Assembly (NCBI GenBank): GCA_051294905.1 | Contig: CM119375.1 | Location: forward strand, 1,178,001-1,242,000 | Direction of reading: 5' to 3' | Source: Botryllus schlosseri | Lineage: Eukaryota | DNA length: 64,000 nucleotides | Shown: positions 13,201 through 18,671 of the stretch, in pieces | Layout of the letters: each line of letters starts with the position of its first letter | Position numbering within the stretch: the stretch's first letter is position 1 | Program-made: the position numbers and the translations under genes | Notes under the pieces: generated by a model | What the model saw: only the letters and a program-made list of their open reading frames with translations | Databases searched by the model: none | What the model was told of the DNA's origin: nothing

Positions 13201-16200
13201 GTATATTTGACCACTTTTGTTCATTGCAATATTAACCATATCCAATCCATCCTGTCCAAATCCATCAATATTGTATCGCGTCCATATCCAAGTCCAAATG
13301 GCTGAAATGTGGCCAAAAGTGGCACGAAAATTGGCAGTTGGGAGATATTTCACGTCCAGGTCCAAATCCGTCTTTAAAGTGATCTTATATCCGTATTCGA
13401 TGCGGATCCGGTCAAAATCATGAACTCCGATTTTTCAAATCAAATTCGAATTCCATGCTCATATCCGCTTTACACTCTATAGGTACTGGGGTCGACAACT
13501 GGTGGACCAACGACAACAACCAGATCGCGTTTTCTCGCGGATCGAAAGGATTTTTCGCCGCTAACAACGCCGGATACGGCATGAGCGAATACTTGTACAC
13601 CGGACTGCCGGACGGATCTTACTGCAACGTAATCCTCGGAGATTTCTACGACGGCAAATGCGCGGGTGCGTGCTGATTCACTCTCTTGGTTCGCGCTCTC
13701 TCCGACGCGCAGAATCGGACAGCTGGATTCTTTTCAGCCTTTCAAAATTATGTATTAGAATTAGAATGATAGCTACACAGTTTTTTTACGAATAGGTTTA
13801 GAAGTAGAATTACTGAATTGGGAATTGGGAATTCAATTGGTCATTGCCTTAAATTCTGAATTAGAAAAAATATAATAAAAGTCACGTTCAGTTCATATCA
13901 TATCAGAGTTAATTCCCATAAGCACGGGAATGGCAAATATCTGTACGCCAAGCTTGGCTCCTTTTACACTATACAGTTCTTCTGTAGCATTTTCAGGAAA
14001 AATTCTGTTAGAATTAAAATTATTGCTAAGAGAACATTTCAAAAATCAGATTATAATTATTGATTACCGGCATTTAGGTCTGACTAGACAACCAGAATTT
14101 TATAGTTGTCCCGGTCTGATAGTTGTGATATTCCACCAGGTGAATGTGTCACCGTATCCGGAGGAACCGCGCAGGTCAACGTCGACGGAAGCGGAGAAAA
14201 CCGAGTTTTCGCGATCTACACAGACGCTATGACGACAGAGTGCAACGTTGGCGGTGGAATCAACGGTGGAGGTAGGGCCGATGTCTTGATGGCATTTAAG
14301 AAGACAGGTGGTTAGTAGCAATAATGTACTCTCTGAGTACTCAAGCAGATTTTGCTGACTTTTTCCACTGAAGTGGTTGACTTTTTGACTACTTCATCTT
14401 CTATATCATCTATTGTTAGAATTTCTTTTAAATAACTTTGTATCGCTACGACGGACTATATTGCTCCTTTATCCCTGTAACAGAATTTATTTTCGGAAAT
14501 ATGCGACCCATCGTCCCAATCTACCTTTTTGAAGCTACGTCATTGAGTGCTTACTTTGCGGGTGTTTCGTTTTCTACTCCCACTGAGAGGAGTTTTTAAA
14601 TGTCATCAAAAATCTATACTTGCACGTGAGTATCAACAGCTAGTACTTTCACATCCTCTGTTTGAGCAACATATTGGATGACTTGATATCTGCAACGATT
14701 GCCCGACATTTAAGCATGCGACACTATGAAAAGAGACATTTAAGCATGCGACACCTTCGGATGGGACTTTGTAAACCCAAAACTAACCCTATCCCCAAGC
14801 CATATAACTCAGAAATCAACCCTTATAGATATCCTAGTCTGGGACCTAATCCTAACCTAACCCGGTATCCAACAGTAGCTCAAGCTAATCTGAATCGTAA
14901 CACACATTGTCTATAGTGTCGCATGACGAGCTCCCACGTGGTGAAATGCAACATGCAATTATGTCGCATACTGCTATGTACATATTGTACACTGACTCTC
15001 TGCCACAGGTAGCGGTGGCGGCAACACGGGCGGCAGCACGGGCGGCGGTGGCAATGTCGAGACCACATGCACGGATTGCACTTGCCCCGATTACGAGAAG
15101 GTCGACTGCGGCGAGTTGGCGTCCACGGAAGCCACATGCACAGCATCTGGGTGTCTCTGGTGTCCACTACAGGATGGCAGCACGGCCCCGTGGTGCTTCC
15201 ACAAAGCTTCCGAGTCCGGTGGAGGGTCTGATGGTGGATCGAATGGTGGATCCAATGGTGGATCTAATGGCGGCGGAGGTATGAATAAAAAAGGACGCTG
15301 CGGTATAAACGCGATGTGGTTTCTAATTAAATTTGAAATCGTAAAGAGCAATTTTTGAGCAGGCAAATACGATATCAGAACCGTATTTGAAATGAATATA
15401 TGATAGAATATGTTCTCAAATTAAAGTGTGATGGCCTTCAACTCTAGCAGTGACGAAGTAAAGCTGTTTTAAGCTCTAATAACCTGTGTATAGGTTCCAG
15501 CGGGTCTTGCAACGATTGCACTTGCATGGAGCGAGTCGACTGCGGTGAATTGGCTAGCAATGCTACCTCGTGCGCGGCTTCTGGCTGTCTCTGGTGCCCG
15601 CTGGAGGACGGTAGCACACAGCCTTGGTGCTTTCACCCGACTGGTGATGTCGCTACGACACAACCGAGTGGTACAACTCAACCTAACGCTGCCACGACTA
15701 CTACGACTGCTTCAGGTGGGTACATTCAAATATACGCATAATTGTACGTGATCAGCCTTAATTAGGCCTGCTACATGTCCTTAGGAGGATTTATCCTAGT
15801 TTCTCGGGAAAGGCGAATGGTCCCCCGAGAACGCTAAAAAATGCCCAAATGTCCTCGTTTTCGCATTTCGAGGTTGTTGCTAATATGCTTTCAACAAGGC
15901 GTTTAATTTATTTCCGAAAAATGACTGCAGCCATGATAAAGGCTGAATTGCTGGTTAAGAAAAGGTCTCTGACGAATTGCCTTACCAGCGCTACCTTCGC
16001 GGTTGTTATTGCAAACATTGTAACATCTGGGCCTTTTTACATACCAGGATCTGTTGAGATTTTCTGGCGGATTTCGAACTCAACAGATCTATTAGCTGGA
16101 TCAGTTTCGAGCATCTTGACGGTTGTGTATAATTTCAATGATATTTAATGTGAACAATTTAACGAGCTCGGTAGAATGACCATTCCTTGTTAGCAGAAGG

Positions 16201-18671: not shown

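Follow-up and report, generated by a model that had tools for sequence, protein, structure and literature searches.

What becomes of a trefoil domain when the adjacent cysteine pair by which it is recognized is split, and two further cysteines are added, is the question raised by a locus of Botryllus schlosseri, a 64,000-nucleotide stretch of contig CM119375.1 (positions 1,178,001 to 1,242,000 of the forward strand; hereafter the window, numbered from its first letter). The + strand of the window carries a gene for a secreted alpha-amylase that ends in an arm of six cysteine-rich modules, of which the last is a canonical trefoil and the first five are not. The canonical trefoil (P-type/TFF) domain has six cysteines, with CysIV and CysV adjacent, joined by the bonds I-V, II-IV and III-VI (PMC7350206), the same three bonds that the first-pass annotation of this DNA had taken as its reference. 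Modules 1-5 are a variant of this well-known sugar-binding domain and represent no new fold or system. It is rather probable that they are genuine trefoil domains of a conserved eight-cysteine subtype with the disulfide arrangement and the lectin-like arm proposed below.

Five eight-cysteine modules and a canonical one

Module bounds are given here from the first cysteine to the residue after the last one. In the six-frame translation, modules 1-5 contain exactly eight cysteines each and lie on the + strand within 15068-18092: module 1 at 15068-15199 (C-T-D-C-T-C … V-D-C-G … G-C-L-W-C-P … P-W-C-F), module 2 at 15508-15633, module 3 at 16568-16696, module 4 at 16820-16945, and module 5 at 17964-18092 (C-T-D-C-N-C … G-C-I-W-C-E … P-W-C-F). 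They share the motif C-x-D-C-x-C, followed by [KR]-[VT]-D-C-G, one cysteine about nine residues on, G-C-[L/I]-W-C, and P-W-C-F, and have 16 invariant columns. Module 5 is the most divergent of the five and the nearest to module 6. An N-A-T sequon is present in modules 2, 3, and 4, and there only. Module 6 is of the canonical six-cysteine type (C-x9-C-G … G-C-C-W … P-W-C-Y) and is split by a phase-0 intron, which the first-pass annotation had not noted, between 18141-18152, comprising CysI (18141-18143) and three further residues in exon D, and 18546-18653, the remainder, in exon E. Once spliced, it reads Q-C-Y-V-D|D-A-D-K-T-D-C-G, which restores the canonical C-x9-C spacing, and it shares K-T-D-C-G-[F/Y]-M-G-I-D with module 5. 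The translation thus bears out what had been noted from the letters on first reading, namely five modules with C-L/I-W-C instead of the CC doublet and an N-terminal CxDCxC, a sixth with the standard cysteine pattern and a stretch in common with the fifth, and the sequons of modules 2-4.

The Pfam Trefoil family (PF00088) has a gathering threshold of 21 bits. Modules 1-5 score 37.3, 31.8, 29.9, 31.7, and 40.5 bits, respectively, and module 6, of which only the second exon was scored, 50.9 bits; a genome-wide scan also places the modules above the cut-off. The homology of the variant and canonical modules, proposed in the first-pass annotation, is thereby upheld. Its suggestion that profile hidden Markov models (HMMs) would score the variants weakly holds insofar as their scores are lower (30-40 versus 51 bits), but they stand well above the threshold and are not missed. 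An adjacent CysIV-CysV doublet is absent from modules 1-5, G-C-C-W being found in module 6 only. Because their CysV lies two residues downstream and loop 1 contains two extra cysteines, modules 1-5 are classed as a variant subtype and not as canonical members of the family. A trefoil signature in the classical PROSITE style matched none of the six modules, the canonical module 6 included, and was discarded as uninformative.

The fold was predicted with AlphaFold2, for module 1 from 103 aligned sequences of both variant and canonical type, and for module 5 from 33 eight-cysteine modules only. The predicted local distance difference test (pLDDT) values are 81.7 and 79.6, respectively, and both models have the same secondary structure, with a short helix at residues 25-30, in the region of the third-from-last cysteine, and two strands at 34-36 and 45-48, which fall on L/I-W-C and W-C-F. 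In the predicted fold the helix bears CysIII, and a two-stranded antiparallel hairpin bears CysIV, the displaced CysV (CysV'), and CysVI. In Foldseek comparisons with the PDB the first 24 rows for module 1 and the first 21 for module 5 are all trefoil domains (TFF3, TFF1, porcine spasmolytic polypeptide, lysosomal alpha-glucosidase GAA, sucrase-isomaltase, MGAM, and ZP1). The best rows have a probability of 0.9-1.0 and a template-modelling (TM) score of 0.54-0.66; TFF3 (6v1c) is matched with a probability of 0.99-1.00 and TM of 0.61-0.66, the upper values being those of module 5. The closest folds are those of TFF1, TFF3 (6v1c, 6v1d), and porcine spasmolytic polypeptide, i.e. TFF2 (1pos), which have in common with the window modules the helix and hairpin, D/N-C-G, P-W-C-F, and the ligand-contacting Asp/Asn and Trp. 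VIA-align gives GAA as its best match (Z 4.9, root-mean-square deviation 2.4 A over 44 residues), with TFF3 at Z 4.7. Among the AlphaFold DB clusters, 29 of the 30 matches are named trefoil or P-type or have no telling name, and the one at rank 14 is named Peroxidase. The Foldseek E-values, which are weak (0.01-0.5), tell against a firm assignment, but such values are expected for a domain of about 45 residues. Modules 1-5 are therefore predicted to adopt the trefoil fold; a non-trefoil fold, the outcome that would have undone the first-pass proposal, is not what the models point to, since at the head of their PDB matches only trefoil domains appear. No solved structure with the C-x-W-C form was found in the structure comparison.

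Spread of the eight-cysteine subtype

A profile built from modules 1-5 and run against 1.84 billion representative proteins gave 429 matches at E <= 0.001, and the modules of the best 150 of these were typed. They comprise 225 plain canonical modules, 20 six-cysteine modules with G-C-x-W-C, and nine in which G-C-x-W-C is accompanied by three N-terminal cysteines. Three upstream cysteines are found only alongside CxWC, in these nine modules and in none of the 256 CC modules. Two hallmarks mark the subtype: the displacement of CysV by two residues down the first strand, which turns G-C-C-W into G-C-[LIMV]-W-C, and the two cysteines added within loop 1 (C-x2-C-x1-2-C). Taken together they give the pattern C-x2-C-x(1,2)-C-x(5,7)-C-x(n)-C-x(n)-C-[LIMVSK]-W-C … W-C, to which all of modules 1-5 conform. 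Altogether 37 distinct eight-cysteine modules fit it, coming from B. schlosseri (C5, C13, and C10), Styela, Clavelina, and unnamed marine sequences. In an alignment of 33 eight-cysteine modules all eight cysteines and both tryptophans are invariant, and the Asp preceding CysII is present in more than 90%.

All the named carriers of the eight-cysteine form are ascidians, Clavelina lepadiformis and Styela clava. A close counterpart of the window gene is the S. clava alpha-amylase-like isoform X1 (P0177, an automatic annotation, 833 residues), with the same architecture of signal peptide, GH13 animal amylase, Gly/Ser linkers, eight-cysteine modules, and a terminal canonical trefoil. Its variant modules read C-T-D-C-T-C … G-C-L-W-C-P … P-W-C-F, the first being ca. 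85% identical to module 1, and in tblastn most of the amylase part is only 51-88% identical exon by exon to that of the window, so that the two would belong to different species or be paralogs; it has four variant modules versus five in the window, and no published account of its cysteine pattern was found. In C. lepadiformis the alpha-amylase A-like and B-like proteins (P0181, P0184) combine the amylase with one eight-cysteine module and one canonical trefoil, and the P-type domain proteins P0003 and P0005 carry eight-cysteine modules in stand-alone trefoil proteins. The Clavelina sequences differ from those of the window in having only one variant module per amylase and in their loop-1 motif, C-x2-C-x2-C versus C-x2-C-x-C. 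Many unnamed proteins from marine metagenomes and metatranscriptomes, 535-705 residues long, contain an amylase, one eight-cysteine module, and one or two canonical trefoils, and others an amylase with a canonical trefoil only. Wherever both module types are present, the eight-cysteine ones follow the enzyme and precede the terminal canonical trefoil. The protein P0024 (amylase, one eight-cysteine module, and two canonical ones), is encoded without introns on a gene-dense 6.1 kb Logan contig (L017), next to a sulfate-transporter gene; P0102, an eight-cysteine module, is encoded on a eukaryotic ENA contig of 337 kb (L020), where an Alpha-amylase_C exon lies 2 kb upstream of it.

The six-cysteine G-C-x-W-C form has a wider distribution. 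Its named carriers are GH31 enzymes of Apostichopus (P0020) and Holothuria (P0074), a sucrase-isomaltase-like protein of Saccoglossus (P0080), a mucin-like protein of Acanthaster (P0011), and an xP2-like protein of the springtail Folsomia (P0121), the modules being N-terminal in the GH31-like proteins among these. They resemble the window modules in the displacement of CysV by two residues, in the same Trp, and in a CysI-CysII spacing of ca. 11, but lack the two loop-1 cysteines. The CC doublet of the TFF domain, which PMC7350206 defines by six cysteines with an adjacent pair, is thus replaceable by C-x-W-C across several invertebrate phyla, and the sea squirts possess a stable eight-cysteine version built upon the C-x-W-C form. 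The eight-cysteine subtype appears to be derived from this wider invertebrate form and to be undescribed. In a module tree computed without the N-terminal cysteine segment and the CysIV-V block the module types cluster, the eight-cysteine type requiring 10 changes versus about 32 with shuffled labels. The tree is based on 31 columns and is poorly resolved, so that the clustering neither establishes a single origin nor speaks against one.

As to whether the pattern is an already recognized and widespread subtype, a circumstance named in the first-pass annotation as one that would refute its proposal, one half of the answer is yes and the other no: it is widespread in the databases, where the proteins are automatically annotated as generic P-type and stand unremarked, but no recognition was found in print. 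No paper on the eight-cysteine form, the six-cysteine GCxWC form, or amylase-trefoil fusions was found, most subscription journals lying outside the literature searched. A literature match to Hydra "SWT/PPOD" was discarded as irrelevant, since it concerns beta-trefoils. Word-indexed searches returned one weak match (P0044) for exon C (164 residues) and two proteins for the trefoil part of P0024, both under a length window that hides longer relatives. For annotation, the signature of the subtype is sharper than a generic Pfam match.

Further modules of these types are found elsewhere in the B. schlosseri genome (495 Mb), where all matches fall on 16 large contigs. Eight-cysteine and six-cysteine G-C-x-W-C modules with a D-C-H-P-E-P-G loop in the style of GH31 proteins are present at C13:8915000-8946000 (L008, L011, L012) and C10:25428840-25429690 (L046). 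GH31 exons lie at C13:8928158-8931714, and one of the C13 eight-cysteine modules is located ca. 5 kb upstream of them on the same strand. A tandem paralog of the window gene is situated upstream of the window, at C5:1165141-1175639 (L006, L007, L009), and encodes an alpha-amylase with two eight-cysteine modules and one canonical trefoil.

Disulfide wiring

In a MAFFT alignment G-C-L-W-C of the variant falls on G-C-C-W-x of the canonical modules, CysIV on CysIV, Leu on CysV, and Trp on the aromatic residue, with the new cysteine two positions later. In a beta-strand the residues i and i+2 face the same side, and CysV' should therefore have the orientation of CysV, displaced along the strand by about two residues. 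A corresponding change is seen at the other end of the I-V bond: the CysI-CysII spacing has a mode of 9 in the canonical modules (218 of 292) and of 11 in the six-cysteine GCxWC modules (19 of 24), with loop 1 of the GCxWC forms exceeding the canonical length by about two residues, and it is 10-12 when counted from the first cysteine of the 37 eight-cysteine modules. The GH31-style six-cysteine and eight-cysteine modules of B. schlosseri can be aligned by hand without gaps in loop 1, both starting with C-P and ending with E-R-x-D-C, and this places the new cysteines of the eight-cysteine loop at positions +3 and +6. The two are always gained together in the 150 best matches.

From these comparisons an arrangement can be proposed in which each eight-cysteine module has four internal disulfides, with II-IV and III-VI as in the canonical domain. 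The first cysteine, the CysI equivalent, would lie about two residues farther from CysII and would keep its bond with the displaced CysV', and the two new loop-1 cysteines would staple each other, through C-x-C in the window modules and C-x-x-C in those of Clavelina. On these sequence grounds, retention of the I-V' bond together with a new staple in loop 1 is slightly favoured over a complete rewiring. If so, the subtype provides structural biology with a natural test of how well the trefoil knot tolerates one shifted and one added disulfide.

Several observations weigh against this arrangement and are better accommodated by a truly rewired trefoil, in which CysV' would bond to one of the new loop-1 cysteines and the I-V bond would be lost. 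With the three loop-1 cysteines denoted Ca, Cb, and Cc in their order, this would leave either a small N-terminal ring closed by Ca-Cc or a Ca-Cb CxxC staple combined with a Cc-CysV' bond. The loop-1 staple of the window modules calls for a C-x-C disulfide, which is strained and uncommon, and which the rewired form avoids. The Ca-x2-Cb spacing is invariant in 37 of the 37 modules, Cb-Cc varying between one and two residues. The VIA-align superposition on GAA begins near the second cysteine (model residue 6 at GAA residue 81), and Pfam puts the second cysteine of modules 1 and 5 at model position 1, both of which fit a Cb-CysV' pairing; in long-loop modules the two methods thus place the canonical CysI near Cb. 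By HMM the CysI equivalent is ambiguous, falling on Ca where the loop is short and on Cb where it is long. Against rewiring, the six-cysteine GCxWC forms serve CysV' with a single N-terminal cysteine at x11, which is the spacing of Ca in most eight-cysteine modules, and the joint gain of Cb and Cc is most simply explained if they form a pair of their own. The rewired alternative is hence possible but rates clearly below the retained I-V' bond. Of the rewired four-disulfide subfamily put forward in the first-pass annotation, the conserved subfamily stands, with 37 modules in which the eight cysteines are kept, and the rewiring is the less likely arrangement.

Two other fates of the extra cysteines were considered. 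Intermolecular disulfides leading to covalent oligomers or to links with mucins, as formed by CysVII of TFF1 and TFF3, have in their favour that these two peptides do use an extra cysteine for covalent partners (PMC7350206), and that one environmental relative (P0035) has seven cysteines. The cysteine count is even in all the window modules, however (46 in the arm, i.e. 5x8 + 6), and the two extra cysteines always co-occur and are located inside the domain, which makes such links very unlikely. The extra cysteine of TFF2, two residues before CysI, is bonded outside the domain. The pairs Ca-x2-Cb and CysIV-x2-CysV' resemble a zinc-knuckle signature and might be read as a Cys4 metal site without disulfides. 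This is scarcely credible, given that the protein is secreted (signal peptide at 4262), CysIV is required for the conserved II-IV bond, the first C-x2-C is absent from the six-cysteine GCxWC forms, and an ordinary trefoil fold is predicted.

The trefoil arm of the amylase

The alpha-amylase and the trefoil arm are one transcribed, spliced gene. The gene lies on the + strand, its signal peptide starts at 4262 in the set of open reading frames with amylase motifs, and the exons of the secreted animal-type alpha-amylase span 4262-14271, as defined by these frames, by tblastn of S. clava P0177, and by the RNA joints 13664>14139 and 14269>15007. The RNA evidence consists of four runs from the same organism, two of transcriptome-like contigs and two of bulk RNA-seq, mapped over 13400-18750. 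The joint 14269>15007 splices the last amylase exon, which ends at 14271, onto the first exon of the arm, and all the joints between the arm exons (15276>15492, 15711>16550, 17043>17951, and 18152>18546) are present in RNA, the last one being supported by 52 and 33 raw reads. A pseudogene or an assembly artefact is rejected in view of these joints and of the low ratios of non-synonymous to synonymous substitution rates (dN/dS) given below.

Exon A of the arm (15009-15278, 270 nt, phase 1-1, with AG|GT boundaries) encodes a Gly/Ser/Thr linker, module 1, and a Gly/Ser/Asn linker, and exon B (15494-15715, 222 nt, phase 1-1) encodes module 2 and a Thr/Pro-rich linker. Modules 3 and 4 share exon C (16554-17048, 495 nt, phase 1-1), together with Thr-rich, mucin-like linkers. 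Exon D (17956-18152), which starts in phase 1 and ends in phase 0, comprises module 5, an Asp/Gly linker, and CysI of module 6. The remainder of module 6 (up to 18653), a tail of five residues, and the stop codon make up exon E (18546-18671). The intron between exons C and D (17049-17955) is of the GC-AG type with the donor CAG|gcaagc, and its joint is present in all four RNA runs. Exons A, B, and C belong to class 1-1, as has been reported of TFF-module exons at large (PMC7350206), the exceptions being the presence of two modules in exon C and the splitting of module 6 by a phase-0 intron. The spliced arm has 435 residues, 46 of them cysteines, and its linkers consist in 56-79% of Ser, Thr, Pro, and Gly and are thus mucin-like.

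In this respect the arm resembles the TFF-module mucins, in which Thr-rich, O-glycosylated segments separate the TFF modules and the module exons are likewise of class 1-1 (PMC7350206), but which contain no enzyme and only canonical six-cysteine modules. The TFF peptides, with their CC doublet, six domain cysteines, and I-V/II-IV/III-VI bonds, are small free peptides and not enzyme appendages (PMC7350206). The vertebrate GH31 enzymes (lysosomal alpha-glucosidase, sucrase-isomaltase, and maltase-glucoamylase) carry a trefoil on a glycosidase degrading starch or glycogen, as does the window protein, but it is a single canonical N-terminal trefoil versus six modules on a C-terminal mucin-like arm of a GH13 amylase.

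What such an arm might do is suggested by the known ligand contacts of the domain. In the crystal of TFF3 with a disaccharide the only side chains in contact with the sugar are those of Asp20, which precedes CysII, and Trp47, which precedes CysVI, and mutation of either abolishes mucin binding (PMC7221086); a lectin role is expected for the TFF modules of sugar-degrading enzymes (PMC7350206). An Asp before CysII and a Trp before CysVI are present in all six modules of the window, with D-C-G and P-W-C invariant in modules 1-5, and among the eight-cysteine modules at large the Asp is kept in 34 of 37 and the Trp likewise in 34 of 37. The six modules form the C-terminal part of a secreted alpha-amylase, on linkers that are rich in Ser, Thr, Pro, and Gly and probably O-glycosylated, and they may act as multivalent, lectin-like glycan-binding units holding the enzyme on mucus or polysaccharide food, and the extra disulfide may add stability in the gut lumen. 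Because the six modules stand on O-glycosylatable linkers ending a secreted amylase, and the subtype also occurs beside GH31 genes, the sequences suggest an arm that binds glycans multivalently and would thereby retain digestive enzymes on mucus or polysaccharide particles.

Alternatively, the modules could be inert, protease-resistant beads that serve the amylase as a stalk, a spacer, or a means of multimerisation, with no sugar binding of their own. The beads-on-a-string architecture with mucin-like linkers would suit such a role; moreover, many related marine amylases have only a single terminal canonical trefoil, and in the vertebrate GH31 enzymes the trefoil packs against the enzyme body. 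Speaking against it are the retention of the Asp and Trp, the sole ligand-contacting side chains of TFF3 (PMC7221086), and the strong purifying selection to which the modules are subject across their entire length, beyond the cysteines alone. In comparison with the tandem paralog, dN/dS is 0.13 for module 1, 0.06 for module 5, and 0.12 for module 6. In modules 2 and 4 the synonymous sites are saturated (24 differences per ca. 29 sites) with only about seven non-synonymous changes, and therefore the internal repeats are old and constrained. The role of inert beads is on balance unlikely.

In its broadest form the glycan-binding reading would make the eight-cysteine module a sea-squirt-specific, four-disulfide lectin domain which arose from an older invertebrate GCxWC trefoil and was repeatedly recruited to GH13 amylases and GH31 glucosidases, tethering them multivalently to the mucus food cord. 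This is a tentative proposal, with more to be said against than for it as a whole. If true, it would be an independent parallel to the vertebrate trefoil-GH31 fusion and a natural case in which the supposedly invariant CC doublet of TFF has been replaced. With the amylase arm and the GH31 neighbours, the lectin role that has long been assumed for trefoils on sugar-degrading enzymes can be put to a direct test in a filter-feeding animal that digests mucus-wrapped food.

Some minor observations concern other amylase genes and the introns of the arm. A second cluster of alpha-amylase exons, apparently of several copies, lies at C5:9703717-9731619, and no trefoil-arm match was found there in the same search. 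The tandem upstream paralog is the probable source of those reads that show an 'AT' variant at the 18153>18549 joint. At 16428-16459, within the intron that separates exons B and C, one of the bulk RNA-seq runs has a stack of about 280 reads on ca. 31 nt; their loose ends on both sides resemble the SMART template-switch oligo, and the stack may represent either a very small, abundant RNA or an artefact of the library. In two runs the contig depth is very high (2250 and 7304) over the intronic stretch 17338-17700. This stretch is rich in the short inverted words CGAGTC/GACTCG and probably represents a multicopy element resembling a miniature inverted-repeat transposable element.

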